NCBI GenBank assembly: GCA_030704615.1
Contig: CM060733.1
Coordinates: forward strand, 66,712,001 to 66,776,000
Length of the DNA stretch: 64,000 nucleotides
Direction: 5' to 3'
Source of the DNA: Takakia lepidozioides
Taxonomy: Eukaryota > Plantae > Bryophyta
The first letter of the stretch is position 1. Each line of letters opens with the position of its first letter. The position numbers and the translations under genes are program-made. Below the pieces are notes generated by a model, which was not told the DNA's origin, made no database searches, and worked only from the letters and a program-made list of their open reading frames with translations. This document shows, piece by piece, positions 1-35,267 of the stretch.

Positions 1-2598
1 TAAAAATTCAGGGGGAGAAGAGAGTTTGAGTCTCTAAGAGGAAAGAGGAAAAATAAAATAAAACACTAATAAAGGTTTCAAACCCGACCTACTCTCCCTC
101 TTCGGAGAGAGTTCGAGTTCCGAGAATAAAATTGTTTCCAATTCGCCATTCTCCCCCACCGGACTGGGTTCGAATCCCCTAGTGATGCTCGAAGATATGG
201 CCGGTGCAAAGTTGATTGTTTTTCTATTCTCACACGGCTTGGAAGGACTTTGAGCCTGAGGGGATAAAAATTTATGGGGAGAAGAGAGTTTGAGTCTCTG
301 AGAGGAAAAATGAAAAATAAAAAGAAACAGATAATAAAGGTTTCAAACCCGACCTACTCTCCCTCTTCGGAGAGAGTTCGAGTGCCCAGATATAAAAATT
401 GTTTTAAAAACCGCCATTCTCCCCACCGGACTGGGTTCGAATCCCCTAGTGATGCTGGAAGATATGGCCGGTGCAAAGTTGATTGTTCTACTCTAGCAAG
501 GCTTGGAAGGACTTTGAGCCTAAGGGGATAAAAATTCAGGGGGAGAAGAGAGTTTGAGTCTCTCAGAGGAAAGAGGAAAAATAAAAATAAACAGATAATA
601 AAGGTTTCAAACCCGACCTACTCTCCCTCTTCGGAGAGTTCGAGTGCCCAGATAAAAATTGTTTCAAAACTCCCATTCTCCCCCACCCGACTGGGTTCGA
701 ATCCCCTAGTGATGCTGGAAGATATGGCCAGTGCAAAGTTGATTGTTCTACTCTAACAACTTGGAAGGACTTTGAGCCCGAGGGGATAAAAATTCAGGGG
801 GAGAAGAGAGTTTGAGTCTCTGAGAGGAAAGAGGAAAAATAAAAATAAAACCATAATAAAGGTTTCAAACCCGACCTACTCTCCCTCTTCGGAGAGAGTT
901 CGAGTGCCCAGATAAAAATTGTTTCAAAACCGCCATTCTCCCCCACCGGACTGGGTTCGAATCCCCTAGTGATGCTGCTCTGAAGATATTAACCAGTTGA
1001 AAGTTTGATTGTCTATTCTAACAAGGCTTGGAAGGACTTTGAGCCTGAGGGGATAAAAATTCAGGGAGAAGATAGTTTGAGATCTCTAAGAGGAAAGAGG
1101 AAAAATAAAAATTAAAACAAATAAAAAGTGCCCAGATAAAAATTGTTTCAAAACTGCCATTCTCCCCCACCGGACTGGGTTCGAATCCCCTAGTGATGCT
1201 CGAAGATATGGCCAGTGCAAAGTTGATTGTTCTACTCTAACAAGGCTTGGAAGGACTTTGAGCCTGAGGGGACAAAAATTCAGGGGGAGAAGAGAGTATG
1301 AGTCTCTGAGAGGCCATGAAGTTAGGGAAGAGCACCAAACACAAAAAACACACTTTTTACTGTTTGGGGGATGGTAGCCATCGTTCCACAGCCCTTTGGA
1401 AAGCCTCACACGCCTCCAAACCACTTGCGCATATCACCAGGTACTTGCAAATGAAGATTTGAAAAGAACAGATAATAAAGGTTTTCAAACCCGACCTACT
1501 CTCCCTTCGGAGAGAGTTCGAGTGCCCAGATAAAAATTGTTTCAAAACCGCCATTCTCCCCCACCGGGACTGGTTCGAATCCCCTAGTGATGCTGGAAGA
1601 TATGGACGGTGCAAAAGTTGATTGTTCTACTCTAGCAAGGCTTGGAAGGACTTTGAGCCTAAGGGGATAAAAATTCAGGGGGAGAAGAGAGTTTGAGTCT
1701 CTCAGAGGAAAGAGAAAAAATAAAACTAAACACATAATAAAGGTTTCAAACCCGACCTACTCTCCCTCTTCGGAAAGAGTTCGAGTGCCCAGATAAAAAA
1801 TGTTTCAAAACCGCCATTCTCCCCCACCGGACTGGGGTTCGAATCCCTAGTGATGCTCGAAGATATGGCCGGTGCAAAGTTTGATGTTCTATTCTAACAA
1901 GGCTTGGAAGGACTTTGAGCCTAAGGGGATAAAAATTCAGGGGGAGAAGAGAGTTTGAGTCTCTGAGAGGAAAGAGGAAAAATAAAAATAAACAAATAAT
2001 AAAGGTTTCAAACCCGACCTACCTCCTCTTCGGAGGAGAGAGTTCGAGTGCCCAGATAAAAATTGTTTCAAAACTGCCATTTCCCCACCGGACTGGGTTC
2101 GAATCCCCTAGTGATGCTCGAAGATATGGCCAGTGCCAAAGTTGATTGTTCTACTCTAACAAGGCTTGGAAGGACTTTTAGCTGAGGGGACAAAATTCAG
2201 GGGGAGAAGAGAGTTTGAGTCTCTGAGAGGCCATGAAGTTAGGGAAGAGCACCAAACACAAAAAACACATTTTTTACTGTTTGGGGGATGGTAGCCATCG
2301 TTCCATAGCCCTTTGGAAAGCCTCACACGCCTCCAAATCACTTGCGCATATCACCAGGTACTTGCAAATGAAGATTTGAAAAGAAACAGATAATAAAGGT
2401 TTCAAACCCGACCTACTCTCCCTCTTCGGAGAGAGTGCGAGTGCCCAGATAAAATTGTTTTCAAAACCGCCATTTCCCCCACCGGACGGGGTTCGAATCC
2501 CTAGTGATGCTGGAAGATATGGCCAGTGCAAAGTTGATTGTTCTATTTTAACAAGGTTGAAGGACTTTGAGCCCGAGGGGATGGGGATTAAAAATTCA
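1..2598. repeat. Tandem repeat (satellite), ~258-bp unit, about 9 units, open at the window start
   Basis: TAAAAATTCAGGGGGAGAAGAGAGTTTGAGTCTCT recurs near 1, 265, 529, 787, 1054, 1272, 1669, 1929 and 2189. A ~150-bp extra block occurs at ~1312-1465 and ~2229-2385. Confidence 0.95.
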
Positions 2599-2784
2599 GC
2601 GCTTCCGCCCGCTGACGCGACCAACGTCACATCAGTTTTGCCGAAAAATCAGTAAAACATGAGTTAGGTGAAAAATATGTCACGAAGGTGGACACGTTGT
2701 ATTCCAAGCGCCACCTTGGCAAGTGAATGAATTATTTTATATACTCCATCCGCCAATATTTGTAAAATCATTATTGTTAAATTG

Positions 2785-3275
2785 GTGCGACCTCCAAATG
2801 GTGGTTGGTCATAGATTTATCTTATTTTTTAATTTGCGACCACCAGAGAGGGGTGTGTCGCAGCCATTTTTGTTTTTAAAAAATAGATGCGACCACCACA
2901 GGGGTGGTGGTCGAATTTTTTTCTTTCTTAAACAGTTGCACAACCAGTACTGTGGTCGCACAATTTTTATTTTATTTTAATAGGTGCGAGCACCATAGGG
3001 GGGTGGTCGCAACTTTTTCTATTTTTTAATATCTACGACACCAGCATGGGGGTGGTCGCAGCATTTTTCAGTTTTTAATAGGTGCGACACCAGCAAGAGG
3101 GGTCGCAGGCAATTTTTGTTAATATGATAATAATAATTTCTAGGACCAGAGCATGGGGTGGTCGCACACATTTTTCTTTTTTTAATAGGTGCGACCACCA
3201 AAAAGGAGGGTGGTCGCAACATTTTTCCTTTTTTTTTAATATCTGCGACACCAGCATGCGGGTGGGTCGCAGCAG
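2785..3275. repeat. Array of imperfect palindromes GCGACCACC-N7/8-GGTGGTCGC with AT-rich spacers (hAT family 1, upstream of the transposase)
   Basis: About 10 copies at ~50-bp spacing (e.g. 2837, 2889, 2938, 2986, 3035, 3083, 3190, 3246). Confidence 0.85.
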
Positions 3276-3729
3276 TTTTTTCTAAAACATAACATTATGA
3301 GTTTTTCGTGCAACCTGGAGCGTCGTCTCGTTCCGTCGTTAGCATTGATTCTGATTCGTCGAGCGTTTGTGAGGCTTGGAGGTGGAGGGGATACAAGGTT
3401 GGTCCCAATGCCCTTCACTCTTTTGTAGCAAACACTTCTGTGGCGAGTGAATGTTCTCTATTCCTTGGCAGAGTGTAAGCCAAGAGGAGGGTGCGATCGT
3501 TGCTGTGGTGGCTTCCACCAGAGCCACTGCAACAAATTGTCGAAAAGCACAATACTACATGGTGCATTGATCCACTTGGATTGATGCCGTAGTGTTGGGC
3601 CATTGCATTCTGTTCTAACTTCTATGCTCTTGACAAATCTACCAAGTACACTAGTGTTTCTTCGTTCAACCTTAAGTCTGGATTAGGGTTTGGGTGTGAT
3701 GATGAGGGAGGAGTAGAGGAGGTAGACCC

Positions 3730-6690
3730 TTGGTTCCGGAGACCGCACAAAAAAGGATGGTGTTCAATGTAATTTTTGTGATTGAAAGCTGGCGGGTCGC
3801 AAAAGACATGGATACTCACGGGCTACAGAGATGGGAAGAATGTAGGGTTAGTTGTGCCCCAAAAGCCTCCATACGAGTGAAAGCCCCACTTTGCCCAATG
3901 TGGAGGCGATATCCCACATCTCTTGATGTTGGCCCGCGGCTTCTGAGCCAAAACACTCCAGGTTCGAATCAAAATGTCCCTCAGAGTTACCAGGAGGATT
4001 CTTGCGATAATCAAAATGTCCCTCAGAGTTGTACCCAGGAGGATTCTTGCGATGCGTTTGCTGTTCGTGGAGAAGCCGGTGGGTCAGGAGCAACACTCGA
4101 TTGTACGCCAGCACTTGTACGGACCAGACCATTGAGACAACAATCAATGCAAGAAGGCTTAAATTTGTCGCACAGAGGACTCTGGATAAGAAGTGGGCCC
4201 AATTTTTTTACGAGGCCAATATTCCGTGAGGCTTCCTGCGTTTGTGGCTGCTGTCAAAACCACGTCTGATTCCAAGTCCACCTACACACCTCCGAGTTAT
4301 CGTGATCTCCGCACAGGATTGCTAGAAGAGGCTATGTCTGACCTCACCCAAAAGGTGAATCCGGAAATATGGAAGCACTATATGTGCGGACGGTTGGAGT
4401 TCTGTTACTAATCGACCACTGTTCAATGTCATGCTGGTCTGTCCTACGGGGGAACAATTTTTGGGATCCATTGACACAAGCGGGGAGAGAAAAGATGCAC
4501 GTTATCAAGCAGGGTTGTTGACGAGTTTCATCGATAAAATTGGAGCTGATAAAATTATCCAAGTGTGCACGGACAATGCATCTATGGTTATGGCCGATAT
4601 TTTGATGGTATGATATCCTCATCTATATTATCAAGGGTGTGCTGCTCATATCTTTGATCTCCTTTTGGAGGATTGGGGAAAAGAATCATGGATGAAACAA
4701 CTAGTAAAAAGGGCAAAGTCGGTTGTGACGTTCATTTGTACACATCACATCCCTCTAGCATTGTTTAGAAAGCATGAACCCAAATACAGCTTTAGGAACC
4801 CGGGTGAAACCCGCTTTACCACAAACTTTTTGATGGTAGATCGATTGGTGACTGTGAGGGCGGGTATGGAGCAGGTGATCATTGACCCTCAATGGGATGC
4901 ATATGTGGGCACCTTACGCGACTCTCGCAAGTCCAAGTCTATGAACAAAAGTTGGAGGGTCCGCGCAATCATTCGCTCCAACAATTTCTGGGCGAAATGT
5001 GCAAATTTTGTGTACATGGTGGAGCCGGTGTTGATTGCTTTGCGGGAGTTTGATGGAAAACAACCAATAATGGGTAAAGCATAGTTCATATTGGAAAACC
5101 TTGATAAGCACGTGCAATCCTTGAGGCGTCATCCATTTTCTATGGGCGATGATTTGGCGGCAAGGACCGATGATGCATTTTACGACCGCAAACGGATGGT
5201 TCGCACGGACTTGTATTATGCGGGGGCCTTGCTGAATCCATTCTTACTGGACAATACGGATTTGAGAGACGATGTGGATGCCAAAGCCGGGCTTGTACGG
5301 GTCATTATGCAACTTGCGCCATTGAACATAGCAGAGCGAGCTTTGTCCGAGTACCAGTGCTTCTCGGATCGCCAGAATCTTTTCCGTGACATGCCGGATC
5401 CAAAAACAATGAACATGTTGCCACATGAATGGTGGGATCTGATTGGAGCTGGAGCAAGAACGTTAGCTCCCATTGCAAAGCGTATTCTTGCTCAAGTGTG
5501 CTCTGCCTCGTTCTGTGAGCGGAACTAGAGCAGTTACTCGTTTGTTCACAACAAGATTCGCAATAGGTTGAATCCTGCCAGGGCTGACAAATTGGTTTAT
5601 GTCTACACGAACTGTAGGCTACTGCGAGAGATGACAGCAAATGACGCATCTACATGGTACAAAAAGAATCTGTTGTCTGAAGAATCTGCCTCAAAGGTCC
5701 AATCTAGCAACAATGATGACACCGACGCCGCGAGGGACTCCGACTCCAACGGTTGGGATGGGTCCGATGATGTGGGCAATCCTCCACATGACCCATATGA
5801 ATTTAATGATGATGATGCTGCAATGTATCCATCCTTCGATGACCTTGTTGTTGATGAACTGCGACATGGTGTCATCCCAATTGCGGACCTTCTTCCCCCA
5901 GTGGAGCACACTCTCAACAATGAAGTTGCGGTCAACTCTCCCCCACCACAAGTTTCACGGACTGCGGGAGATGTGTAGGTCGAATCGTCGGATGATGACA
6001 ACCGGCCGTTGTCATTCCTTCACCGACATCGTGCCCCTGTGAACCGTGCTTCATCTCATGCCGCTCCATCTCATGTTTCTCTTTCTCAAGCCGGTCCATC
6101 CCAGGCTGGTCCATCTAGTCTCTCTCCCCCTCATGTAATTCCTTCCATTGCTACTCCAATCCTGGGAGATGCTTCTTCTGCTGCGGGACTTCTACAAGTC
6201 GAACCATCGGATGACGACAACCGGCCATTGTCGTTTCATTTGGCCCGACGACGTCTGCATGTGAACCGTGCTCCCTCAACCCTCGTTGGTCCTCTCATGC
6301 CCCTTCCTCTCATGTCGGCCCATCTGCTATACGTGCGAGTAGCCTTCCTCATACGAGACTTGCTCCAAGGCCACCACGAAATCCGAGACAAGACCAGAAA
6401 CGGCAAAGAATTGTGCAGCCTTTTGTTGGTGACCGACTTGTGAACAGGCCTGATACCTTAGATGGTATTCATGATAGGAGTGGAAATTGACGAGAGAGAC
6501 AACTGAACGTACTCCGAGGACGACTACAGGTCCAACGGCCAGTTGCCTCTGGAAACGGAAGAACAGATGGAGATCATGATTCTAGCACTGATCATGGGAA
6601 CGGGGGTGAAGTAAGTGGGGACGAAGATTTTGTACTAGGCGTGAGATCATACCATCATCGTCGTGCCAGACGGAACTAGGTACATCTATA
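3730..6690 (+). pseudogene. hAT-superfamily transposase pseudogene (degenerate BED-like finger, DUF659, hATC dimerisation domain, long acidic/low-complexity C-terminal tail)
   Basis: Pieces DKKWAQFFYEANIP, ICADGWSSVTNRPLFNVML, IIQVCTDNAS, YYQGCAAHIFDLLLEDWGK, PGETRFTTNFLM, HEWWDLIG..LAPIAKRILAQVCSASFCERN*SSYSFVHNKIRNRLNPARADKLVYVYTN. In-frame stops near 4611, 5082 and 5526, plus frameshifts. Confidence 0.93.
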
Positions 6691-6939
6691 ACTTCTGTCA
6701 CATGATGTGTAGTATGTTTCCATGGATATCCATGTTTCAGTTTGGGTACATGCATACGTGTACGGAAATACTATGGTGGAATATGTGTACCCAACAAAGG
6801 GTTTGGTGGTTGTGCGTGTGTTTGTGTTTCGTCATTACCTTTATATTGTTGATTTCCTATTATGGTTTCGAAAGCCACAAAGGCCAGGTGCAGCTCCCAA
6901 CATTCATCTTCCCCTTCACAAATCCCACCCCCCTACAAC

Positions 6940-7230
6940 CACCCCCCTGCTAGTGGTTGCATCTATTAAAAAAAAAGAAAATAGTGCGACCACCAGCAGG
7001 TGGTGGTCGCACCTATTTGTTTTAAACAAAATTTCTACGACCATCTCCCTGCTGGTGGTCGCGCATATTAAAAATAATAATAATTATGCGACCACCTCCC
7101 TGTTGGTGGTCGCACCTATTAAAAAAAAAAAAAATCTGCGACCACCCCCCTGCTGGTGGTCGCACATAATAAATAAAAGAAAAATGATGCAACCACCCCT
7201 TGCTGGCGGTCGCAGTGGGGGTGGTCATAA
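6940..7230. repeat. Second GCGACCACC/GGTGGTCGC palindrome array, between the transposase and the RING gene
   Basis: Copies at ~6987, 7037, 7089, 7138 and 7189, period ~50 bp. Confidence 0.85.
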
Positions 7231-7244
7231 CTATTACTAGCGCG

Positions 7245-7310
7245 CGCCCCGAGTGTGGGGAGTTTATAAGGCCTTGGAGGCCATTCTCTCCCTCACTTTT
7301 CTCCACACCA
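7245..7310 (+). promoter_or_regulatory. Putative core promoter of the element's second gene (G-run, TATA-like TTTATAAG, CATTCTC-CCTCACTT Y-patch)
   Basis: The same module (G-run-ATATAAGCC...CATTCTCCCCTCACTT) lies at 17708-17770 ahead of the homologous ATG in the second family, and at 11985-12050. Confidence 0.5.
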
Positions 7311-7632
7311 GGTTTTGATGGGCGATGAGATGTTGTATTCCTTGTCATTGAGTCCAAGTGGAGAGGGGTGCTATTGGTTGGGTGGGGGGTATTTTGGGCC
7401 GTCGGTTTCTACGAAATCGATGCTGAGTACCTCCCGAGAAGCCCTCCTCTCGCACCCATGTTTTTTTCATTGCACATTGCGTCATATCACCTAGAACTGC
7501 GGAGGGAGTGACACGTGCCTCTAGTACTTGGGGAGGATTCATTAGGGAGTAGGATTAGGTACAATTTAGGAGGGTTGGGAGAGCATTTTTCTTAGCAAAC
7601 ACCTGTCAAGTAGGGGTAAGCCAGAGCCATAA

Positions 7633-10169
7633 ATGGCGGAGGAGGAAGACAGAGGAGGTCATCCCAGGGATGACGATAATGAATTTGGACCTCCCAAAAA
7701 AAAACCAAAAGGGGCCAGGCACGAACTTCGTTGGGACATATATAATGACCCCAACATTCTTGCGGAACCAGGTTGGGAAGTTTGGAGGTTGGGGCAGCGG
7801 TGGTTGCTTAGTGTTTGTAGGAAATTTGTGATTGGTGTCACATAAATCGTTTGTGGCCCAGAGATAGGCATGATCCACAAACCAAACAAAATCAAGCTAG
7901 CTTGCATTCCTGCGCCAACCCGCATTTCCGCCACGGGGCAGAGGAGGTACATACAACATTGTGGGGTCAACCGCTCGTCAACAACAAGGTCCCGTATTTA
8001 TTTGCGGCCATGTTGTACACAGAGTTGATTTTATTGCGACCAGTAGATTGACAAATTGCCACTGCGAGACAACGTACTAGACTATGCATGTTCTCTGATA
8101 TCCCAGACTTGTATATACGTCAGGGGCATGACATCATACGGTTGGATGGAAACGACGAGGTGGAAGAAGGAGGAAAGGCAGACCAACCTCCAGATTATAC
8201 GCCGCAACAGGTCTCCGCAGCCGGGCCTTCAACGTCTGAGGTGGAGGGGGGCGAGGTACGCTTTCAGTTGGAGGAGCAGTTGGCCGCACATGAATAGCAC
8301 ATCAAGGACCTGCAGAACATTGTTCATTTGCAACGGTGGCAAATAGCGAAGCTGCCGGAAAGAATGGGGTTGGGGACTCTAGACAGCGTACGCGGTGTGC
8401 TTCAGGACCCGAGGCCAATCACCAACGAGCAAGACATATTGGGGCGTTTGAATATGCCACCAATGAACATTGACCGCGTCATCGATAGGGTTGACTCAAT
8501 CGGGCATGGGAATGAAGTGCAAACGCCTAAACTGGACCCGGCGAGGGTTGAGGAAGAAAGACTTGCGGCGGAGAGGGCAAGAAAAGGGAAGGACCCCATA
8601 GTGGAAACTGGGGAATGTTCAGCCGTGCAAATTTCATCGGCCCGGGAACAGGAATTAGAGCAGCCTTTGTGGGGGAACGCGAGCAAGCTAGGGCTGTTGC
8701 ATATTGGTACTCAAATGCCATGCAAATCCGATCGTGGCCATGGTTGAAGGGGAATTGGCGGAATTGGGTGACATGGGTGGGCCATCTAACATCGCGGGAA
8801 ACACGGATAGAAGAAGCATTGTCCTCCCTCCAACGTGCAGCACATTTGTCGAATCAAAGCGTAGACATCATCTTTGCTAATTTGCAAAGGCACGACACTG
8901 TGCGTGATGTATTCACGTCGAAGTACACTGGATTCACCACATGGGGTGATGTGGATGCCATGTTTGAGCAGTGTGTGTATATAATTTCCGATATCAATAA
9001 AAGCATAAACTGGGATTTGGAAGTAGAGGAGGAGTGGAACAGCAAGCCGAGGATGTCATCCAACATTCATGAGGATGAACGGACGTGGATACCACGGAGC
9101 AATCCAGCGTCATGGGTAACAGATGGTACGGTGTGCACAATGTGCCTAAGCCCTTACGGACCGGAGGGAGGCTATATGCTTGGTTCATGTGGCCATTTGT
9201 TCCACCCCGCATGTCTCATATCGGCAGCCATGCGAGCCAGCCAATGCCCTGACTGTCGTGGACCAATCCATCGACGTTTCTACGAGTTGTTTAGGTTGCT
9301 AGACAATATGCCCACGGGATACGAGTACAACCGGTACAACATGCCATTGGATGTATCGCCTTACGATTTTTTAAATTGGCAGCACTGGGGGGGGGGGGGC
9401 AATGACATGGGATGCTCCAAGAGAGATGCACACCTTGGATGCTATGACGTTAACTAGGGTTAAAGATCCGGTGACCTTTTGGGTGACATCCAACTGGGAA
9501 ATAACCGTGCGTGCTCGAGGCATACGGGACCCAGTCCAAATGAAGCTTTTTTGCCGGAACTTGGGAGGGCATTGGAGCTGTACCAGACAAAGATTCTTCC
9601 GACTGCCTGAGGATCCGTGGGTGCCAGCGGAAAACGACCCATACAATAGCGAACCGATTGGGAGAGACCTATTTCTGAGGGAGTTGGAGGCCGCTAGCAT
9701 CCGTTGGGAGGATATGAATGAGAGGTATTGGGTGCCTCGTCGGGATGAAGGGCCATTTCCTCCAGAGTTGCGCAGAGACCCCCAGCAGGAGGAGGTGTTG
9801 GACAATTTCAAGGCTGCCATCACGAGTGTTGTAAAGTATTGGCAGAACACATGGCGTGACCAAGTTGCCCATATTCCAGGGTTGTTCTTGCCACTTCCAA
9901 ACATATCGGATTTAATTGCAAAATTGCATAAAGCCGTAGCAAGAGCGACAAACCCGGCTGTGGCAAATGTGGAAGAGAGTCAGCACTCGCCTAGAACGCT
10001 ACGCATGATGGCAAGGGTGGACCATACAACACTGGGTCCCTCTTTGACCACTCGAGCCCAGGTTCGAGCTCTCCGTACTGGTGGAGGCACGTCCTCTACA
10101 CCCGGAGCATCTTCATCAACATCTGGAGATGACGACAACGAAGTAATAAATCTAGATGAAGATGACTAG
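7633..10169 (+). pseudogene. Transposon-borne RING-H2 protein (~840 aa when reconstructed): N-terminal NLS, RING-H2 finger, C-terminal SIM-like motif; disrupted
   Basis: Consecutive ORF pieces 7633-7845, 7851-8051, 8088-8297, 8328-8747, 8615-9457 and 9402-10169. CTMC-x14-CGHLFHPAC-x10-CPDC at 9134-9256 (C3H2C3). PPKKKPK near the N-terminus; ends ...EVINLDEDD*. Stops at ~8049 and ~8295. Confidence 0.85.
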
Positions 10170-10294
10170 AAATGTTAGAAACGTAGGGAGTAGGCCAAAG
10201 GTCTCAAGTTGCGAAAACTTAAATGTGCAACCCACTGTATAGTCTACGTAATTTTTGGAAATACGAGGTTCATCCTTTGAACCATTTTTTGAAT

Positions 10295-10910
10295 GACCTC
10301 ATACTTGTTCGGTACCTGTTTGACGGCATGTACAATATATTGGCAAAGTTTCAAAACAACCAAAAATTGCTGAATGAATATACCATTGGTTCATCCATTG
10401 CAATATTTTAAATCAAACTCATACTTGTCCGGTACCTTTAAGAGGGCATGTACAATGCAATGGCAAAGTTTGAAAGCATTCAGAAATCGGCACATCAAGT
10501 AACCATTGGTTCCTCCTATGAACCATTTTTTATTGATCTCATACTTGTCCGGTCCATGTAAGAGGCATGTAGAACATACTGACAAAATTTCAAATCATTC
10601 AAATTTTTTATTTATCAATGAACACTTGGTTTATCCTTTTCACCATTAACGATTAATCACGAATAAATGAACAGACAAATAAATCATTTGCCTCGAAAGG
10701 ATTTTGGTTCGCTTTGAGACTTGGCCAGTATGTTCAATGTACCATGGAAGAGGCCCCAGAGTAATATGAGATGAACCGAAATTTGTTCAATGGGCCAGCG
10801 GATGTCCAAATGATTTTCGTTCGCTTTGAGACTTGGCCAGTGTGTTCAACGTACCCTCTGATAGGCCCTAGTATAATATGAGATCAATGGAAATTCGTTC
10901 GATGGGCCAA
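10295..10910. repeat. Subterminal-type ~120-bp tandem repeats (two families)
   Basis: CATACTTGTCCGGTACC..GGCATGTACAA..GGCAAAGTTT at ~10300, 10420 and 10540. GATTTT.GTTCGCTTTGAGACTTGGCCAGT.TGTTCAA at ~10700 and 10812, with an inverted copy at 12650-12720. Confidence 0.8.
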
Positions 10911-11275
10911 TGAGGCGTTCAGTTGTCATCTGGTTTTTGTTCATTACGAAAAAGAAATCCTGCAATGCGTGCACGACACCCATTGAACGGATGTGGTTGA
11001 AGCCCCTTTATTGCCCGCATGTGCTTGAACATGTGTGCAACACATGTGCGGAGACACAACAGACGAATAAATCATTTGTCTCCCCATCGACACCAAGCCA
11101 TTCCATAATGTAATTGAATTTAAATTAATTTTAAGCCAATAAATAGGTTTGCACTGCCTTTCATTGGGGGTATCTGGCACGTATCGATTTTATTTTTGGC
11201 TCAATTTTGTCTTGCGGCTTCAAGCATCCCACTGCTACTTCCCCGCCAGAATTTGGACCAATAAAAAATGTCCCA

Positions 11276-11932
11276 AAAAAAAAATGTTCTCTTCGCTCAC
11301 CATTGCATAACTCTCTATGAAGAGTGCATGAAGTAGAGCACAAATCAAGTTTGGAGTGCAAAACGGGCAAGAAACTAAGGTCTTTGGGTCCAAATGAATT
11401 TTGATCGCTCCCAAATTTGGCACGCACGTTGCATATGAGTCATTACACGCCCCATTCAAAAGATCTGCTTCGCCACGGAATTCACTCTTTCTGTTTGGCC
11501 GTCCGTCGTAGGTCGGAAGACGGTGCTCATCTCCTCCAAAAAAAAATGTTCTCTTCGCTCACCATTGCAGAACTCTCTATGAAGAGTGCATGAAGTAGAG
11601 CACAAATCAAGTTTGGAGTGCAAAACGGGCAAGAAACTAAGGTTTTGGGTCCAAATGAATTTTGATCGCTCCCAAATTTGGCACGCACGTTGCATATGAG
11701 TCATTACACGCCCCATTCAAAAGATCTGCTTCACCACGGAATTCACTCTTTCTGTTTGGCCGTCCGTCGTAGGTCGGAAGGCGGTGCTCATCTCCCCCCA
11801 AAAAAAATGTTCTCTTTCGCTCACCATTGCAGATTTTTCTATGAAGAGTGCATGAAGTAGAGCACAAATCAAGTTTGGAGTGCAAAACGGGCAAGAAAAT
11901 AAGGTTTTGGGTCCAAATGAATTTTGATCGCT
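11276..11932. repeat. ~262-bp tandem repeat (2.5 copies) containing a captured Ty3 integrase fragment
   Basis: Units start at AAAAAAAATGTTCTCTTCGCTCACCATTGC (~11276, 11538, 11800). The first two units carry the reverse complement of 39011-39076 ([21 protein letters not shown]). Confidence 0.9.
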
Positions 11933-12054
11933 GGAGCGATCGCCAAGGTAACGGTCGGTTCTACGAGGTTTGCCCTACGTGTAGAACAAGGAATGAGGCC
12001 GGGGGGGGGGAGGGCATATAAGCCCCCAGTCATTCTCCTCTCACTTCCATTACT

Positions 12055-12320
12055 GGCAGTTTTTGTTACTAATCGGGGCATCCTGACGGGAAGATGGAGT
12101 GTTTTGCTCAGAGGTCATGTCCAGATCCAAAGACATTGGAATATTGCCTCCACACTGGGCAAAGTGGTTTTTTATCCGCATAGATGCTTTAGCGCATAAA
12201 CCCACCCCAACGCTCTTCACAACTTTATAGCCGAGGTGAGCGAACAACCGATCCTTACGATAAGAAAACTTTAATTCACATAGGTTGCACTCAACACTAC
12301 TAGTGGCACTAACAGCCAGC
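12055..12320 (-). pseudogene. Displaced N-terminal (BED-like zinc finger) fragment of hAT family-2 transposase
   Basis: VECNLCELKFSYRKDRLFAHLGY..VGLCAKASMRIKNHFAQCGGNIP aligns with the degenerate 3760-3930 segment of family 1. Confidence 0.75.
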
Positions 12321-12994
12321 AACAGTGAGCGAAGAGAACATTTTTTTTTTTGGGGCATTTATGATTGGTCCAAATTTTGGCGGGGGAGTAGTAGTGGGAT
12401 GTTTGAAGCCGCAAAACAAAACTGAGCCAAAAACAAAATTGATACGTGCAAGATACCCCCAATGTAAGGCAGTGCAAACCTATTTATTGGCTTGATAATT
12501 GTTATATAGGGTTCTACCAGTAAATGACACTCATTTCCAAAATCGGTCAAAGAGTGCACTCCTGCACCATCCAGAACCGTTCGATTGTGGCCATATCGGA
12601 TATCAACGGCGCCGGAAATTGATCTGCAAGACAATGTATCGCATTGTCCCTCATATTACTCTGGGGCCTCTTCCATGGTACATTGAACATACTGGCCAAG
12701 TCTCAAAGCGAACCAAAATCATTTCGATGGCCAACCATCCATTGAGCCATTGAATGAATTTCGATTGATCTGATATTAGTCCGGGACCTGTGAGAGGATG
12801 TCTCAAACGTACAGGCAAAGTTTGGAAGCAAACAAAAATGATTTGGATGGGCAACCATCCGTTCACCCATTGAATGTATTCTGTTGGATCTGCTATTACT
12901 TTGGGACCTGTTGGACTGCGTTTCGCGTGCTCATGTTTTTTTTTTCATTCCGTTTTTTAATGGGGCGTGTAATGACTCCATATGCAACGTGCGT

Positions 12995-13570
12995 ATTACT
13001 GGCGGTCGCTGCATTTTGAAAAAGAACAATTACAGCGACCCCCAGTAATGGCGGTCGCTGCATTTATAAAAACAAAAAAAAACTTCAAGCGACCGCCTGT
13101 AATGGAAGTGAGGGGAGAACGAGTCGGAGCCCTTTCCCCCCTGCCTCACTCCTCGCTCCATGTGCAAGACACACTTCGTAGAAGCGACCGCCACCTTGGC
13201 GGTCGCTCCATTTTTATTTTCAAAACAATTAAAATAAAAGCGACCGCCATGTATCCCCCCCCCCCCGGTCATTCCTCGCTCCACGCGCAGGACAGACCTC
13301 GTAGAAGCAACCGCCACCTTCGCGGTCGCTCCATTTTTTTAAAAACAACGACCGCCAGTAATGGCGGTCGCCCCATTTCCAAAAATAAAAAAATAAAAGC
13401 GACTGCCATAGTGACGGTCGCTGCATTTTAAAAAATAAACATTACAGCGACCACCAGAATGGCGGTCGGGGAGAATGACTGGGAGCTTATATGCCCCCCG
13501 CCTTATTCCTCGCTCCACGCGCAGGGCAGACATCGTAAAAGCGACCGCCAACTTGGCGGTCGTTCCATTT
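12995..13570. repeat. GCGACCGCC/GGCGGTCGC palindrome array (family 2), inverted relative to 16540-16750
   Basis: 13200-13470 is the reverse complement of ~16540-16745, including CTTCTACGAGGTCTGTCCTGCGCGTGGAGCGAGGAATG. Confidence 0.85.
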
Positions 13571-13828
13571 AAATAAAAATGAATGCACAGTTGGAAGCAT
13601 GGCACAATTGTTCTCCATTCCACAAGCAAATCACCGAACACAAACATGAGCAAGTGACGGCCGACATTTTGGCTGGTATACACATGGGCAATATCTTTTA
13701 TTTTCCAACACATACACAACAGCAATACAATTACTCATAGTGACAATGATCACACTGGTATTACTTCACTACAGAAATATAAACATGTCCACTAAAATGT
13801 GCTGATGCATGCCTACAGCTGTTTTGCT

Positions 13829-16535
13829 TCAATTTCTACTGCTTCCACGGCGGGACGAAGAAGATCCTAATCCTAATGCTCCGATGGGTTGAAGATCCGG
13901 GTCACCCTCGACTTCACCACCGTTGCCATGATGAGTGCTGGAATCGTCCTTCCTATCCGACCTCATATGTCCAGGCCTTTGAATCTGCAAGCGACCTCGA
14001 ACCTCATTTAGTTCTCTCTGAGGTCGACTCCCACTCCGGTCTTGAATATTATCCACAGTATCTGGCCTGTTTGTGGGCCGATCGCCTACAAAAGGTTGGA
14101 CTATTCTCTGTCGTTTATGGACTTGGGACGCAATCGAAGGTGGTCTTGAATGAGGTACCGGATGGGGGTATGCCCGAGATGGACCGGCATTAGATGGTCC
14201 GGCATGTGAGGAACCACGGGTCTGCTGCGCAACACTTCGGTTAAGGTGGAATTGTAGTGACAGGTTATCATCATCCAAGGCTTCAACTTCTGTCCGGTCC
14301 AATGCAGTAGAATGATGCGTGCGTGTAGAAAACAGATCAATCCTATTGCTCCTTAATGCCCGCTGTGTTGATGGAGAGCTAGATCAGTTTTGGCATTGTG
14401 GTGGAGCTGGTCGTATCGGTGAGGCATGATCCCGTCCCGTTGACTGTACAATGGGTTCGATACCATCGTTTGTATGAACAGGGTTGCGTACATCGATCGA
14501 TCCTGGCAGCACATCACCCCTAAGCTCCATTGGGGCACTACCGGTGGCTTCAGCGTGTAGTGGGGGGCGAGGGTCGACCCCGACTTCATTTTGAGGACCA
14601 TGTTCTGGGGATGACACAATTGCAGCTTCACCTTCATCTGCGATACGCACTTATTCAAAAAGGTCATCAAAGGTCGGCTGGATATAAGCATCCTCCTCTG
14701 TGAATGTAAACGGGTCATACGCATTTTCGGGAGCATCATCGGATCCATCTTCACTATCGGAGGCAGATGATTCCCTCTGAGATGATTCTCTCTGAGGCTC
14801 AATATCGTCACTCATCCAATCAGCCTCAGAAGCAGAGTTTTCGGAATGCAAATTTCTCTCATACCATGCTGCAGCATCATCCGCTGCCCTCTCACGTAGC
14901 AGTCGGCAATTGGTATACACATACACCAATTTGTCAGCCCTTGCGGGATTCAACCTGTTGCGAATCTTGTTGTGAACAAATGAGTAACTGCTCCAATTGC
15001 GTTCGCAAGATGAGGCAGAGCACACTTGAGCAAAAATACGCTTCGCAATAAGAGCCAATGTTCTTGTTCCAGCTCCAATCAGATCTCACCATTCATGTGG
15101 CAAAATATTGAGCTCTTTAGGATCCGGCATGTCCTCAAAAGGATCGCGGCGATCTGATAAGCATTGGTATTCGGATATAGCTCTCTCTGCATGGTTTGGC
15201 AGAGCCAGTCTGCCTCCTATATATTGCCAAAGGGATGTGGTGTGTACGGATGAACGACACAACAGTCTTCGCTCGCTTGACAAGCACGTCCAATCCTTGA
15301 GGCATCATCCCTTCTTCTTGGAACCTGAATTTGCGGACAGTGTTGAGGATGCATTTTATGACGATGGTTCGAACGGACTTGCATTATGCGGGGGCTTTGC
15401 TCAATCCATTTTTACTCGACAATACCATGCTCCGAGACGACGCTGATGCCAATCGAGGCGAAATGTTTTGTCACTAACTTCTTGATGGTGGATCGGTTGG
15501 TGACGGTGAAGAGCAGTCTGGAGCACACCATCATCGATCCTCAATGAGATGCGTACACACGGACATTGCGGGACTCCAGAAAAGCCAAGTCATTGGGCAA
15601 AAGTCGAAAAATTCGAAATAACATTCGCAGCGATGATTTTTGGAAGAAATGTGAAAACTTTGTTTATATGGTAGAGCCGGTGTTAATCGTCTTGCGGGAG
15701 TTTAATGGAAAGCAACCAGTAATGGGCAAGGCATGGTTACTAATGCAAAATCTTGAGAGTTGTTTCACCCACTGTTCTTTTCCCCAATCTTCCAAAAGGA
15801 GGTCAAGGATATGAGCAGCACAACCTTGATAGTACATATGGGGATAACGTGCCAACAACATGTCTGCAGTGTTTCTCATGTTAGCGGCATTGTCTGTGCA
15901 TATTTGCACGATTCTATCACTTCCGACCCGTTCGATGAAGTCCGTCAATAGTTGGCATTGATAACGTCCATCTTTCTTCTCGCCGCTAGTGTCGACCGAT
16001 CCCAAGAATTGTTCCCCAGCTGTACATACGAGCATGACATTGAACAACGGTCTGTTTGTAACAGAACTCCAACCATCGGCACATATAGTGCTTCCATATG
16101 TTCTGATGCACTCACCCGTCCTATCATTGACCTTTTGGGTAAGTTCGGTCATGGCGTCTTCTAGCAATCCTGTGCGGAGATTGTGATAAGTCGGAGGCAC
16201 GTACATGGATCTGGACTCCGAGGTTGCTCTAACGGCATAAACAAATGTCGGAAGCCTTGCCACATTAAATGGTATGTTGGCCTCGAAGAAAAACTGCGCC
16301 CATTTTTTATCCAATTGTTTTTTCGTAGACAAGTTAAGACCTTTCTGCATGGATTGTTGTCGTAATCCTCTACTCCGTTGAAGTGTAGGGGTACAAAGAG
16401 GTGTTGAAGCAGGTGTTGCTCCGGCACAACCCACTTGTCCAAGGACACCCGAAGCCTCACAAGAGCAAGGGCAGGGTGTTGGGTTCAGCGAGATTTCTCA
16501 CGATTACACTTGGTGGGGAGCAGGTGTTTCATGTA
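13829..16535 (-). pseudogene. Second hAT transposase pseudogene (family 2), internally scrambled
   Basis: ORF 15664-16434 (DKKWAQFFFEANIPFN..ICADGWSS..VQICTDNAAN..GCAAHILDLLLEDWGK) and ORF 14651-15058 (CSASSCERNWSSYSFVHNKIRNRL). The C-terminal tail 13829-14650 is homologous to 5930-6690. 15272-15755 is in plus orientation. Confidence 0.93.
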
Positions 16536-16539
16536 GATG

Positions 16540-17690
16540 GCGACCGCCATTTCTGGCGGTCGCTGTAATGGTTATTTTTTAAAATGCAGCGACCGCCATT
16601 ACTGGCGGTCGTTTTTTTTTTTCTAAATGGAGCCACCGCGAAGGTGGCGGTCGCTTCTACGAGGTCTGTCCTGCGCGTGGAGCGAGGAATGAGGCGGGGG
16701 GGGGATATACATGGCGGTCGTTTTTATTTTAATTATTTTGGAAATGAAGCGACCGCAGTTACTGGCGGTCGCTTTTTTGTTTCTTGGAGGAAAATGGGGC
16801 GACCGCCATTAGGGGCGGTCGCCGGTATTGTTGTTTTTTGTAATTGCAGCAACCGCCATTATTGGTGGTCGCCGATATTGTTGTTTTTTGTAATTGCAGC
16901 GACCGCCATTAGTGGCGGTCACTTTTTTAAAAATTTGGTTGGAAATGGAGCGACTGCCATTTGTGGCGGTCGCTTTTATTTTAATTATTTTGAAAATGAA
17001 AAGGAAGCAACCGCCATTACTGACGGTCGCTTTTATTTAAATGTTTTTGTAAATGAAGGGACCGCCATTACAGGCGGTCGCTTCTCTATATTTTGGAGGA
17101 AAATCAAGCGACCGCCATTACGGGCGGTCGCTGCAATTGTTTTATTTTTTGTAAATCCAGCGACCGCCACTACTGGCGGTCGCTTTTATTAAAATTTTGT
17201 TGGAAATGGAGCGACCGCCATGACTGGCAGTCGTTTTTATTTTAATTGTTTTGAAAATCAAGCAACCGCCATTACTGGCGGTTGCTTTTATTTTATTTTT
17301 TTTGAAAATGTCTGCTCAGCTGTACCTTGGTGGTTCTCACAGACCAATCGGACATTATCTGATTACAGACATAAGCAGTACACACAAGAGGTCCTTTTGG
17401 ATTGATGGTCGGTCAAATCCTCCATGGGTCATGACACAAGGTCAAGGACAATGTGGACCGCCATTACTGGCGGTCGCTTCAATTCTTAATGTCTCCGTAA
17501 ATGTAGCGACCGCCTATGTTGGCGGTCGCTTATTTATTTTATTTTCGGAAAATGGAGCGACCGCCTGTTCTGGCGGTCGCTTATTTTAATTTTTTCCGGA
17601 AAATGGAGCGATCACCAGTTCTGGCAGTTGCTTATTTTTTAATTTTCCGGAAAATGGAACGACCGCCAAGTTGGCGGTCGCTTCTAGAAG
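16540..17690. repeat. Long array of 24-bp palindromes GCGACCGCC-N6-GGCGGTCGC with ~26-bp A/T-tract spacers
   Basis: About 19 copies, e.g. 16749, 16799, 16849, 16899, 16950, 17007, 17058, 17108, 17160, 17211, 17262, 17506, 17557, 17608, 17659. Confidence 0.92.
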
Positions 17691-18050
17691 ATTCGCCCTG
17701 CACGTGGCCCGAGGAATGGGGGGGGGGGATATAAGCCAAGGGAGGCTCATTCTCCCCTCACTTCCTCTCCACACAACTTTTGTGTGCGTGACACTTCATT
17801 ATTCCACGACACGTAGTCACGTAGAGAAAGAGGACATTGGTTGGGTGGGGGGTATTTTTTGCCGCGATTTCTGTGAGGTCGTTGCAGAATGCTCCCATAG
17901 GCCCTCCTCTGGCTTCCAGGATCATTTTATTCTACAAAATTAGCTTTTAGGAACTATTTTGACACCTACTCAAACCTACTTAACGGGGGAAGGGTTTAGA
18001 GTTACGGCTTATTAGAAAACCTCGTTTAGTGTTGCTTCGATTGTTGCAGA

Positions 18051-18325
18051 ATGGCAGAGGGCTAGGACGATGACTGTCATGGAAGAGATGATCCCAATGA
18101 ACATGGACCGCCCCCTAAGAAAATCAAAGGGTCAAGGCAAGACTTGAATTGAGAAGTATATAGTGACCCTAGCATACTAGTAGAAGAGGGCTAGGAGGAT
18201 GTTCCGGAAGAGTTTAGGTGGCCGATGGCGAGATGCAAAAAATTCGTGAAATGGTACCACATCAATCGATTGTGGCCTTTGGATAGGCATGACGTGCAAA
18301 CCCAAAACAATTACGCAGAGTCTCC
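18051..18325 (+). pseudogene. 5' fragment of the family-2 homologue of the RING-gene N-terminus
   Basis: MAEG*DDDCHGRDDPNEHGPPPKKIKGSRQDLN*EVYSDPSILVEEG*...CKKFVKWYHINRLWPLDRHDVQTQNN matches MAEEEDRGGHPRDDDNEFGPPKKKPKGARHELRWDIYNDPNILAEPGW...CRKFV..HINRLWPRDRHDPQTKQN at 7633. Confidence 0.85.
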
Positions 18326-18668
18326 CAGTTGTACTGTCAGGAAATGCAGGTTCATTCTCTCAACCATATGACTTTACCCACCTATCTCAGCAACAGCGAT
18401 AAATCCTACATATTGTTTAGCCACCATCTTCACAGTACTTTTTTTAACTGACCAATTTCAATAAGCAATCTTGAATTCCATAAGATCAAAAAGAATGTGT
18501 GTCATCTTTGTGCTCAAACATTGCTGTTAGACCCTCAGGCATGGAACTTAGCAAGGCATTTTTCAAGCTCACTCTCGCTTTACGAAATCAATGTGAACCT
18601 CTGGAAACTTGAACGTCTGCAGGCCTATAATTCTGGAAATAATAATCAAAATCTTTATCCATGTGCAG

Positions 18669-19873
18669 GTTTTTGAGTGTGAGAGACGAAATTCACAGTA
18701 TGGAATATCTGCATACGCACTCGGGACCTTGCTATCATGCCTGCCTTTCCTTTTCCTGATGTCTCTGGTGTCCTCATGCATAGTGTACTTCCTCGTGGAG
18801 CTGCATGCAGGATTTGGGCACTTCATGTATTTCGTTTGTATTCTCTTCTTCAGTCTGCTGGTAGTTGAGAGTTTAATGGTGGCCATCGCAGCTATAGTTC
18901 CAAACTATTTTGTGGCCATGGTTGTCGGAACTGGATTTCAGGTATGCATCATGCTAGTGTCTTCGCCATAGAACATGCATTGAATTTCAACTACCAGATC
19001 TCAAGTGTTGTTTGCACATCTGTAGTAGGGGACATCATCGCTACAACATAAGCCACATGTTGAAATTTTTTGGCAAATCATTTCTATTGTGCTTAGAACA
19101 TGAACTGAACAAAAAGCTCACCACAGTTAAATATGTAAATCTGTGTGCGGTAGTCTTCAAGTTTTAGCATAACCTCTACAAATGCCAACACAATTTCTAA
19201 ATAGACATTGCAGAGCATATTTATGCTAGTTGGGGGCTATTTCTGACTTGCCCGTGACATTGCAAGGCCTATTTGGACATATCCACAGTCATACATCTCC
19301 TTCCACACATATTCTATTGCGGTAATTCTCAGCCCCATCTTATGCTTTGCTTTGCCAGATATATTATGAAGGGCTTAGCTCTATTCTGGTGGTCTGGGCT
19401 GTGTTTTATACTTCAGCAGGCAAAGGCTTTTTCTAATTAGCACTCCATCCCCAGTTTGGTTTGGGCAAAAAGAGGAAAAGTGGTGTGAGAATACAAAGAA
19501 CTGAATTTCAGGCACATCCCTATTGCAGAGAGAAACCCACAAACTTTTCACTGTCCACATGGATGCCATTTTGGATTTGACAGGGCATGTTTGAGAATGA
19601 ATTCAGGGGCTTAACGGATCTTCACAACAGTCTCCAACTTCCAGGCGCTATGTACAAATTGGAGCGTCCTGGAAAGTGAAAAGATGTGGTTATTATCTTA
19701 TGCATGGCTGTATTTTACCATGCTGTGTTCTATGCATTCATTTCTCTATACCAGTACACCCAGCCCCTGCTGGATTCCTTCAAGCTTCAACGACAGCAAA
19801 GATGGAGACCCTGAAGCATGGTTACTTTCCTGGCTCAAACCACTGTTGCTTTCTGGTGAAACTAGACCATTAG
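18669..19873 (+). pseudogene. ABCG half-transporter (WBC/ABCG11-like) 3' exons, pseudogene
   Basis: GT-AG exons: 18669-18941 (VFECERRNSQYG..LVVESLMVAIAAIVPNYFVAMVVGTGFQ), 19214-19321 (SIFMLVGGYF*LARDIARPIWTYPQSYISFHTY, TGA at 19244) and 19584 onward (GMFENEFRGL). The NBD exons are absent. Confidence 0.85.
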
Positions 19874-20309: not shown

Positions 20310-21340
20310 TGTCGCGCACCTCACTTCGGTAAACTCCCCTTCAAGTCGTAGTTACTCGCTTTGATTCGCGCGCCTAACTCCCAAACTGGCCGCCGGGCCA
20401 ACTCGGAGCTTCGGCTGCTCACCGGGGCATAACGGTCCCCCTTGCACCTCCAAAAGACCATCCACCACTTTGGGCCTAATATCAATTCCCTTTGATAGAT
20501 GGCAGTCCGGAATAGCTCCCCACACCTTGGTCGCTTTTCGGCTCGCACGCTTACTCACTAGCTTTTGGTCACCAACGGGCTTGCACCGTTCTCAGGGTTA
20601 CTACTCCCTATATATACTTTTGTAGGTGTCCGCGGGGGTTCCACAACTAGCCAAGTCCAAATCTGGTGCACCACCACCTAGACCCTCGACCTCTTGTGGT
20701 GAGTCGCGATGAGTCTTGGCCCACCTACCACGGCCCCAATGGACCGCGGTGAGTCCCAAGACTCCCCACGACTCCCACCACAAAGCCTCAGCCTCATGGT
20801 GAGTCCTATTCCACCCCCACTACGACTCCCTAAGCTACCACCACCCCTCGTGGAGCCCCCCCACCGCAACCCGGTTTGCGGGGCTCCACCTAGTGAGCGC
20901 CTCCATCTCCGGCACTCAAGGGTGCTTCAGCCCCTTTTCCTATTCGCTACCGTTGCCCCCACCACAGGGGCAGCCCCTCTTGTGTCCCGACCCCCCGTCC
21001 TCAAGGCGAAGGGCCCGCGACACACACCCTTATCAACGAGGAATCGATGTCCTCATCGACTTGTCCTTTTTTTGTGGAAACTAACATCCAAGTTGTGGCA
21101 TCCCACATCAAGGAGTTTGTTTCCGTACATGGCGTCCCATGACAAAGAATCAAACCCTCACTTGACTCTACTCCCCACTAGCTAGTTTGGCCGACTTCCT
21201 CCAAGTCATGGCCAAGGATGGAGCTTCTCAAACTCCACCCAGTGCACTCTTCTTGGCCCTCTTCATGGCCAAGGAACGATCCTCTTCGGGGATCGAATTG
21301 CCTTATTGCAACAACATTGTTTGCGACTGGTTGTGATGCC
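20310..21340 (-). mobile_element. Truncated Ty3/gypsy 3' end (LTR 20310-21022, PPT, part of the 3' UTR), same family as 34491-41458
   Basis: Diverged reverse complement of 40420-41458, with TGTCGC...GCGACA termini. Confidence 0.9.
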
Positions 21341-30223: not shown

Positions 30224-31920
30224 TGTCGTAGGGCATACATATCGCTACACAACTACATCATTGTCCAAAACCACACAACATATGTGCACACCAAACACTA
30301 GTCTATCACTAGTCCACCACTAGTGCACCACTAGGCTGCCACTAGACAACCACTAGTCACCACTAGTACAGTCACTAATCCACCACTAGGCTGCCGCTAG
30401 CCACCACTAGTGCAACCACTAGGCTGCCACTAGCCACCACTAGTGCAGCCACTAGTCCACCACTAGGCTGCCACTAGCCACCACTAGTGCAGCCACTAGT
30501 CCACCACTAGGCTGCCCCTAGCCACCACTAGTGCAACCACTAGGCTGCCACTAGCCACCACTAGTGCAGCCACTAGTCCACCACTAGTGATGCCACTAGT
30601 CCAACCACTAGGCTGTCACTAGCCACCACTAGTGCAACCACTAGTCCACCACTAGGCTGCCACTAGCCACCACTAGTGCAGCCACTAGTCCATCACAATG
30701 ATAAGGAAAGGAATGATACAAGCATACAAGCTCTCTCAAACTCACACACTTGCACATGAAAACATCACTCATATATTAAGTCGAACCAAGTGCACCCCAC
30801 GCCATGGGGAATCCATACTACGGCGCCATAGCTAGACGCGGTGAGGTTCAACTCGAGAAAGATGAGCCCACCGCGATCTGCCGTGAAGATAACAACGCCA
30901 GGTGCCCAAACATGTATTGGCCTCTGGATTGACACTTGGGTCAATCCCAAATATCAATATATAAAAGCTAGCTATTTCCTAGCTAACTTCACACCAGTGG
31001 TAAAATAACTTGACAGCTGTCGTGCGCATACATATCGCTACACAACTACATCGTTGTCCAAAACCACACAACATATGTGCACACCAAACACTAGTCTATC
31101 ACTAGTCCACCACTAGTGCACCACTAGGCTGCCACTAGACAACCACTAGTGCAGCCACTAGTCCACCACTAGTGCAACCACTATGCTGCCACTAGGCTGC
31201 CACTAGCCACCACTAGTGCAGCCACCAATCTCCATCAGGAACCCTCTCAAGAGGTGGTGTCAAGCATCCCATGTGCCAACCTCTTGAGCATCGATCACAC
31301 ACCAGCATAGTGGCGGCACCACGAGCATGCCCACATAGCATGCAACGCAACCTTGCAGGTACCACTGCAAGGGTGGGATCTATCCTCTCATCCACATGTG
31401 GAAGGTGACATGGCGCACAATTGCGCACATGATCCTTCCATACCATGCCATCTCGACCCTCCAGAATCAACACTCCTGAAGGTAACACCTCCCTGACCCT
31501 TAGAATCACACGTCCTGCTGTGACATCCAAGGTCGTAGGCGTTGTCTGCTGCAGATACACATAGTCTCCACGGTGGAAATGCCGAACACCTGGCCGATAT
31601 CCCTCTCCACGTATAGTGACATACCTCAATGTGTCTCGGTGTTGGGCAATAGCAAGATTCTCAAAAGCCATAGGCATGACTCTCTTGAACAACTCTGCCC
31701 ACTGGGCACATGCTTGTGTCCACACATCCGGATCATCAAGGTTGAGGACTACTGCAGCCTCCCTGCGAATAGACGCAAGCAAATCTGGCTCTCGGCCAAA
31801 GAGAATGAAGTATGGTGAGAAGGAGGCAAGTGATGCTTGCTTGCTAAACCCGTAGCCCATGGCTAGCCAAGGTACCTGAAGATCCCAATCTCCTAGGTGT
31901 CCCTTTTGCAAGCCATACTG
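30224..31920 (-). mobile_element. Ty3/gypsy fragment: integrase C-terminus with PHD finger, partial LTR (31018-31220) and full LTR (30224-31015) with CCACTAG minisatellite
   Basis: ORF 31213-31911: WDLQVPWLAMGY..SPYFILFGREP..CMLC..MLVCDRCSRGWHMGCLTPPLERVPDGDWW (PHD). LTR bounded by TGTCGT...TTGACA; 31018-31210 repeats 30224-30420. Confidence 0.85.
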
Positions 31921-35214: not shown

Positions 35215-35226
35215 TGGTATCAGAGC
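35215..35226 (+). other. Primer-binding site complementary to initiator tRNA-Met
   Basis: TGGTATCAGAGC, 2 nt after the 5' LTR. Confidence 0.93.
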
Positions 35227-35267
35227 TTAGAGTTCAGTACGCGATCGTCCTTGGGATTGGCCTCATC

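Follow-up and report, generated by a model that had tools for sequence, protein, structure and literature searches.

A RING-H2 gene as a probable accessory gene of a hAT transposon lineage with two decayed copies in a Takakia genome

Elements of the hAT superfamily are textbook one-gene cut-and-paste transposons, which normally carry a transposase alone. A stretch of 64,000 nucleotides from the moss Takakia lepidozioides (contig CM060733.1 of assembly GCA_030704615.1, positions 66,712,001 to 66,776,000; hereafter, this whole 64-kb stretch is referred to as the window and numbered from its first letter) raises the question of whether a hAT lineage can own a second gene. In two places in the window, a gene for a protein of one RING-H2 family lies beside a DUF659-type hAT transposase. 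A first-pass annotation, made from the letters alone, proposed that the two genes form a two-gene hAT transposon seen in two diverged families, that the RING gene is inherited with the element, and that its product resembles SUMO-targeted ubiquitin ligases (STUbLs). We asked whether the RING gene belongs to the transposon or is a chance neighbour, and what its protein might do. Our analysis suggests that the RING-H2 gene is probably an integral, co-inherited accessory gene of a DUF659-type hAT lineage, kept under selection, and the two copies in the window are decayed, rearranged members of that lineage. Any one specific role for the protein can be put forward only tentatively.

The first copy (family 1) reads, all on the plus strand, palindrome array, DUF659-type hAT transposase, second array, TATA module and RING-H2 gene (Table 1), with about ten hairpin units in the first array. 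Its transposase matches DUF659 at 5.8e-12 and Dimer_Tnp_hAT weakly, at 0.067, is 42-45% identical to the intact transposases of three external loci described below (L004, L006 and L007), and carries at least three in-frame stops and two frameshifts. The RING gene that follows has a basic patch (PPKKKPK), the motif IIRLDGNDEVEE at 8133, a complete C3H2C3 RING domain (zf-RING_2 match, 3.4e-7) and a terminal VINLDEDD; it is damaged by at least three frameshifts and a stop, the frame shifting near 7830, between 8048 and 8675, and at 9392. The second copy (family 2) belongs to a diverged family that has its own arrays and its own transposase; of the same RING gene it retains the initial ~115 codons. 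Its transposase (DUF659, 9.4e-36; Dimer_Tnp_hAT, 8.4e-5) has 63% amino acid identity to that of family 1 and is read from the minus strand (16488-14657), so that it and the RING remnant point away from each other; its N-terminal part is displaced to 12304-12089. Each copy has its transposase between two arrays in mutually inverted orientation. A promoter-like module is common to the family 1 RING gene, the family 2 RING gene and an orphan copy in the region between them, and array cores of the family 1 and family 2 types are absent from the rest of the 64 kb, bar one stray match at 36407. The arrays, transposases, TATA modules, RING, motifs and homologous N-terminus that the first-pass annotation had described were all found where it had placed them. 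It had also called both copies dead, and they are: both family 1 genes carry the stops and frameshifts given above, the family 2 RING remnant has three stops, and the local copies encode nothing functional any more.

An exhaustive profile search with the window RING piece, followed by look-up of the encoding contigs, recovered a RING family of 58 cluster representatives at E < 1e-10, the full-length members of which are single ORFs (open reading frames) of 787-1124 aa. At nine distinct external loci, one of which (L017) is counted on a truncated 976-aa ORF next to the RING gene that was taken without a hAT domain check, an intact RING ORF and an intact ORF for a DUF659 hAT transposase are separated by 0.5-1.2 kb. 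The RING ORFs at these loci measure 1039-1184 aa where complete, and the DUF659/Dimer_Tnp_hAT transposases 966-1048 aa. The two genes are convergent in L004/L005 (counted once), L006, L007, L011, L012, L015, L017 and L018 and divergent in L010; L010, L011, L012 and L015 come from a pattern scan of Joint Genome Institute (JGI) metagenomes. In the window, the arrangement is tandem in family 1 (transposase, then RING gene) and divergent in family 2. Another RING-family contig, L003, starts with an adapter remnant and resembles a transcript.

L004 and L005, which derive from different samples, are 98% identical over 10.3 kb (L004:4712 to 15051), with both genes inside this block. They diverge directly past ...GACGTCCTGACAACCCTG, a terminus written …CAACCCTG, which on the complementary strand (CAGGGTTG...) has the typical form of a hAT end. 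The two loci have different flanks, as independent insertions would. Because of this identity block and its point of divergence, both genes can be placed in one repeat unit with a hAT terminus. The unit spans the transposase, the RING gene and then 2.5 kb more up to the start of the L005 contig, and its hAT-type end lies outside the upstream array of the transposase. This organization bears on an alternative explanation based on insertion preference, according to which the neighbourhood of RING genes, of the host or of other elements, is a recurrent landing site of a one-gene hAT (array, transposase, array). Such a history could leave the RING gene outside the inverted-array pair that flanks the transposase, where it is found in both window copies, and the transposase cassette flipped relative to the RING gene, as it is between family 1 and family 2. 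However, the L004/L005 unit holds both genes together with the further 2.5 kb inside an end that lies beyond the transposase's own array, the two genes co-diverge (see below), and the flip is equally explained by recombination between inverted arrays. We regard repeated insertion beside unrelated RING genes as highly improbable.

Both genes show similar purifying selection. Between L004 and L006, dN/dS (the ratio of nonsynonymous to synonymous divergence) is 0.32 for the RING gene (dS 0.72) and 0.29 for the transposase (dS 0.57). Pairs at greater distance show saturated dS and nonetheless keep the two ORFs whole. The pairwise identities of RING protein and transposase are correlated as well (r = 0.79, the pairs not being independent of one another). 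A maximum-likelihood tree computed for the RING region has the window gene as the first branch of a clade with 100/100 support that contains every linked locus, and because it branches at the base, the linkage spans the deepest split of that clade. For the window's broken genes (RING and transposase), both the identity table and the tree used joined frame-pieces; the identity table has an X at most joins and reads in-frame stops as X, and in the tree two pieces were abutted at the frameshift.

The same results speak to a second alternative, namely that the RING gene is a captured host gene carried as a passive transduplicate without a role for the element. DNA transposons do pick up host genes, and the fungal ToxhAT is a hAT element with cargo. 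A passenger of this kind is hard to reconcile with ORFs of ~1000 codons that persist at saturated synonymous divergence and with the low dN/dS of the RING gene. None of the ORFs is interrupted, and an element-type array lies upstream of each. Moreover, the family was recovered from unannotated assemblies only, with no source-named homologue among the matches that would be a host gene. We consider passive capture very unlikely.

The proposal that the RING gene is inherited with the element is thus borne out by the nine linked loci, the single repeat unit with a hAT end, the similar purifying selection and the basal position of the window gene in the tree. A number of points weigh against this reading. 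The external loci are all metagenome contigs, and gene order and orientation vary between lineages (tandem, divergent and convergent). No transposase match was found in the 0.85-1.0 kb downstream flank of the clade-1 contigs L013 and L016, whose short flanks make this result uninformative, and none, likewise uninformatively, in up to 1.9 kb of flank in four short contigs (at most 4.9 kb) of a second, deeper RING clade (787-896 aa). The left terminal inverted repeat (TIR) of the L004 element falls off its 15-kb contig, so only one end is seen, and for either window copy neither a TIR nor an 8-bp target-site duplication (TSD) is definable, the hAT-type end of L004/L005 being the one that could be placed. 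Lastly, the E3 ubiquitin ligase activity of the RING protein, its nuclear location, its target and its benefit to the element are things that we infer.

The TIRs of hAT elements are short and as a rule begin with (C/T)AG. The window was searched for ends with the reverse complement of the candidate left end of family 1, the L004 terminus and (C/T)AGGG(G)TT patterns. The layout of the family 1 left edge (end, ~190 bp, array, ~450 bp, transposase) parallels that of the proven L004 end; we nevertheless treat this left end, at 2597, as a candidate, because no matching right end was found in the 64-kb window. TTTAGGGGTTAA, which recurs in L010, L006 and L004, was considered as a possible TIR; its flanks gave no matching TSD.

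As to the description of the element as "two-gene," it holds in some lineages only, because L004 has at least one extra gene. Inside the L004 repeat unit there is also a RING-less paralogue that shares the N-terminal domain of the RING protein, and the contig carries, as a candidate further gene of the element, a weak kinase-like ORF 5.5 kb from the RING gene (Pkinase at 8.2e-5, below the Pfam cut-off; kinases in the PDB at ~3e-3). No kinase homology was found in the window. L010, on the other hand, is an apparent ~9-kb two-gene element, seemingly without the kinase ORF: its G+C content drops from ~0.48 to ~0.30 near 9000, and its left edge bears the subterminal motif of the L004 end, GGACGTCC. 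The AT-rich flank of L010 (L010:9517-12905) carries TTTAGGGGTTAA several times, in one or the other orientation, together with a short isolated stretch of the element's CGGACGGC array (11322-11500), which may be deletion derivatives of the same element.

A further common feature is the arrays themselves. In every case, arrays of short GC-rich motifs, of the CGACCGCC or the CGGACGGC class, are found upstream of the genes and near the end; in the window, the array units are palindromic and are followed by the shared TATA module. The idea of one motif per element was rejected, since L004 and L006 use the CGACCGCC class before some genes and CGGACGGC before others. We infer that recombination between inverted arrays can flip gene cassettes, which would account for the tandem, divergent and convergent arrangements noted above.

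What, then, might the RING protein do? The window gene preserves the full C3H2C3 ligand pattern, as do 19 of 21 relatives, and Pfam zf-RING_2 matches 21 of 21 members. None of the eight zinc ligands is missing from the domain, which also has the CPxC proline, an Arg after the last Cys and, in its first loop, the family signature FGPEG. An AlphaFold model of it superposes on the solved RINGs of RNF165, RNF4, gp78 and Ring1b at 1.3-2.0 Å over ~48 residues. In most members, a basic patch precedes an N-terminal domain of ~120 residues that is predicted at pLDDT 87. The fold of this domain found no Foldseek match in the PDB (best VIA-align Z 3.5; TM at most 0.43 in the ESM Atlas). Behind the RING, a conserved region (WNLPLDQ...FCRNFGGHW) has no Pfam match, and a structure search with it gave generic helical bundles only. 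A Pfam scan of the RING-family proteins returned nothing besides the RING, and a protein atlas search generic RING clusters only.

The first-pass annotation had called the protein STUbL-like, a reading in which SUMO-interacting motifs (SIMs) would bind SUMOylated silencing factors or the transposase and the RING would ubiquitinate them. The RING is indeed a canonical RING-H2 with Arg after the last Cys, and RNF4 and Arkadia-type RINGs are among its structural matches, although such matches are generic to RING-H2 domains. PIAS-like hydrophobic-acidic tails are present in the window (VINLDEDD), P0047 (DIVDLTD), P0151/P0152, P0153 and P0012, and internal motifs like IIRLDGNDEVEE occur in several members. 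However, the C-terminal motif is found in only ~8 of 26 members and is absent from all external linked loci in which the C-terminus can be examined, among them L004, L006, L007 and L010, all of which are intact and under selection, and the internal SIM-like motifs sit at non-homologous positions. Conservation across copies extends to the RING ligands but not to the SIM-like residues. Since the SIM-like tail is found in few members and the internal motifs are not positionally homologous, we rate the STUbL mechanism as possible but unsupported, hold it to be decidedly unlikely and do not retain the label.

Of 24 RING-family proteins, 13 have a different short motif, [AGV]GPS (often xAGPS[TN]S), in disordered parts, against a mean of 0.79 and a maximum of 5 after shuffling. 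The window RING gene has it as well (AAGPSTSE), as does the C-terminus of the RING-less paralogue, and the C-terminal tail of each window transposase contains two copies (QAGPSQAGPS and HAGPSNAGPS); the sites are 6009-6443 (+), 13829-14302 (-) and 8088-8297 (+) in the window and L004:3786-4823 (-). The motif may be a shared docking or phosphorylation site. The RING protein could be imagined as a cofactor of transposition or an autoregulator, its target being the transposase or the transpososome (e.g., via transposase stability) and not host silencing. The tight pairing of both genes over deep divergence would fit such a cofactor, and the presence of the motif in many RING proteins, in the paralogue and in both window transposase tails hints at a common partner. 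Yet other hAT transposases (Ac, Hermes, Tol2) act alone, and the motif is missing from the transposases of L004, L006, L007 and L010. We see a cofactor as a conceivable but doubtful role.

Our preferred reading, in which host silencing factors rather than the transposase would be the target, draws on analogy with VANC and the VANDAL motif arrays and with the viral protein ICP0. VANDAL elements that encode VANB/VANC have non-coding arrays of short lineage-specific motifs and carry an accessory protein for which an anti-silencing role has been proposed or demonstrated (Hosaka et al. 2017, PMC5735166; PMC10398659). In general terms, the RING protein, predicted to be a nuclear E3 ubiquitin ligase that is active and serves the element encoding it, would remove or disable a host factor that silences the element, or would control the turnover of the transposase. 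Targeting would come from the N-terminal domain, which the RING-less paralogue shares, or from the post-RING domain. A narrower form, in which a chromatin-directed E3 would be brought to the element's own arrays, via the N-terminal domain or the transposase, and would destroy silencing factors in cis, strikes us as unlikely as it stands. If true, it would make the ligase a transposon counterpart of herpesvirus ICP0 and a protein-degradation analogue of VANC, and the inverted arrays would in addition allow cassettes to flip between lineages.

Table 1. Positions of element-related features in the window
Feature	Position	Strand	Remarks
Satellite junction and candidate left subterminal region of family 1	2597..2785	+	Satellite homology ends at 2599
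Family 1 palindrome array L	2786..3280		TGCGACCACC..GGTGGTCGCA hairpin units, ~50-bp period, 5' of transposase
Family 1 hAT transposase pseudogene	3730..6443	+	Core homology 4125-5888; DUF659 and Dimer_Tnp_hAT
Family 1 palindrome array R	6938..7215		Same units, inverted relative to array L; 5' of RING gene
Promoter-like module of family 1 RING gene (G-run/TATAAG/CTCACTT)	7240..7305 (approximate)	+	Conserved with family 2 module
Family 1 RING-H2 accessory pseudogene, ~840 codons	7633..10169	+	N-terminal domain 7669-8048; RING 9134-9256; acidic SIM-like tail 10143-10166
Tandem repeats of 120 bp and 112 bp, 3' of family 1 RING gene	10267..10909		Candidate part of the element; inverted copy at 12650-12854
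Third copy of array unit and TATA module, in scrambled region	11932..12050	+	Orphan
Displaced N-terminal (zinc-finger) part of a family 2-type transposase	12089..12358	-	tblastn: residues 21-108 of L004 transposase
Family 2 array A	12997..13583		GCGACCGCC / GGCGGTCGC units
Family 2 hAT transposase pseudogene	13829..16488	-	Internally inverted segment 15195-15757
Family 2 array B	16525..17733		Units as in array A; between divergent transposase and RING remnant; followed by TATA module near 17715-17775
Family 2 RING-gene remnant	18051..18431	+	Basic patch and N-terminal domain only; three in-frame stops; cut off before ABCG exon at 18609

The region between the two hAT copies is a scrambled block (10690-12860). 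Its segments 10693-11306 and 12319-12854 are inverted repeats of each other with up to 99% identity, and between them lie 2.5 copies of a tandem repeat with a 262-bp unit, which contains a scrap of Ty3 integrase. The same block also holds the orphan TATA module and the displaced transposase N-terminus listed in Table 1. Directly 3' of the family 2 RING remnant, an ORF at 18609-18971 (+) matches the membrane domain of ABC-2 type transporters (PF01061, 1.6e-15) and represents either a gene fragment or an ABCG gene of the host that the element has broken.

The wider setting of the window is plant-like, with a 264-bp satellite, a Ty3/gypsy element, pentatricopeptide-repeat (PPR) genes and the ABCG exon. 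The satellite (1-2599) consists of ~10 units of 262-264 bp at ~90% identity and stops exactly where the family 1 region starts; although one stretch of it resembles GGTTCGAATCC, ARAGORN found it free of tRNA genes. The Ty3/gypsy retrotransposon (34000-43000) has gag-protease-RT-RNaseH-integrase ORFs (RT, reverse transcriptase) with a chromodomain-like integrase tail, repeated blocks resembling long terminal repeats at 34061-35213 and 40415-42071, and a related solo piece at 20310-21340. An integrase-like fragment at 31213-31911 (-) ends in a PHD-finger-like Cys/His cluster (CMLCGH...VCDRCSRGWHMGC). At 56153-57693 (+), with repeated DNA at 56489-58797, there are tandem pentatricopeptide-repeat ORFs typical of a land-plant PPR gene.

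A RING ligase that is selected through deep divergence would mean that accessory counter-defence or regulatory genes occur in hAT elements too, beyond Mutator-like elements (MULEs), CACTA and Harbinger. The element would offer a testable case of a plant transposon that uses the ubiquitin system; its motif arrays are simple enough for binding assays, and two conserved regions of its protein had no match in Pfam or among solved structures. Full-text literature searches found no published hAT lineage that has a RING accessory gene, and a 2026 atlas of Arabidopsis transposable-element proteins, searched for relevant terms, mentions no such element.

Among known systems, the Ac/Ds-type plant hATs (Ac, Tam3, Tag1) share with this lineage a transposase with DUF659 and the hAT C-terminal dimerisation domain. 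The L004 end (CAGGGTTG...) can be compared with the CAGGG/TAGGG ends of Ac, and the repeated short motifs near the L004-type end with the subterminal transposase-binding repeats of Ac. The lineage differs from them in its conserved second gene (RING-H2), to which some lineages add the paralogue and, as a candidate, the kinase-like ORF, in the size of its units (more than 10 kb, L010 apparently ~9 kb), and in having motif arrays before every gene, not just at the ends.

On the side of the protein, the STUbLs and related ligases (RNF4, Slx5/Slx8, Arkadia, ICP0) likewise have a RING with Arg after the last Cys, and some members of our family have SIM-like motifs; here, however, these motifs are unconserved, and the protein is far larger, with two conserved regions that match neither Pfam nor a solved structure. 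ICP0 is a precedent for a genetic parasite that turns such a ligase against silencing. An extra gene in a mobile unit is also found in PIF/Harbinger (the Myb-like ORF2), CACTA (TnpA/TnpD), the MULE and CACTA elements that carry Ulp1, and ToxhAT, but a hAT that has a conserved RING ligase is not among them, and in ToxhAT the extra gene is passenger cargo and not a lineage-wide accessory gene. The VANDAL elements resemble the present lineage in being multi-gene DNA transposons with motif arrays in their non-coding parts and an accessory protein. They are MULEs and not hATs, however, and VANC is a DNA-binding anti-silencing factor without a RING, whereas the arrays described here are known from sequence alone.

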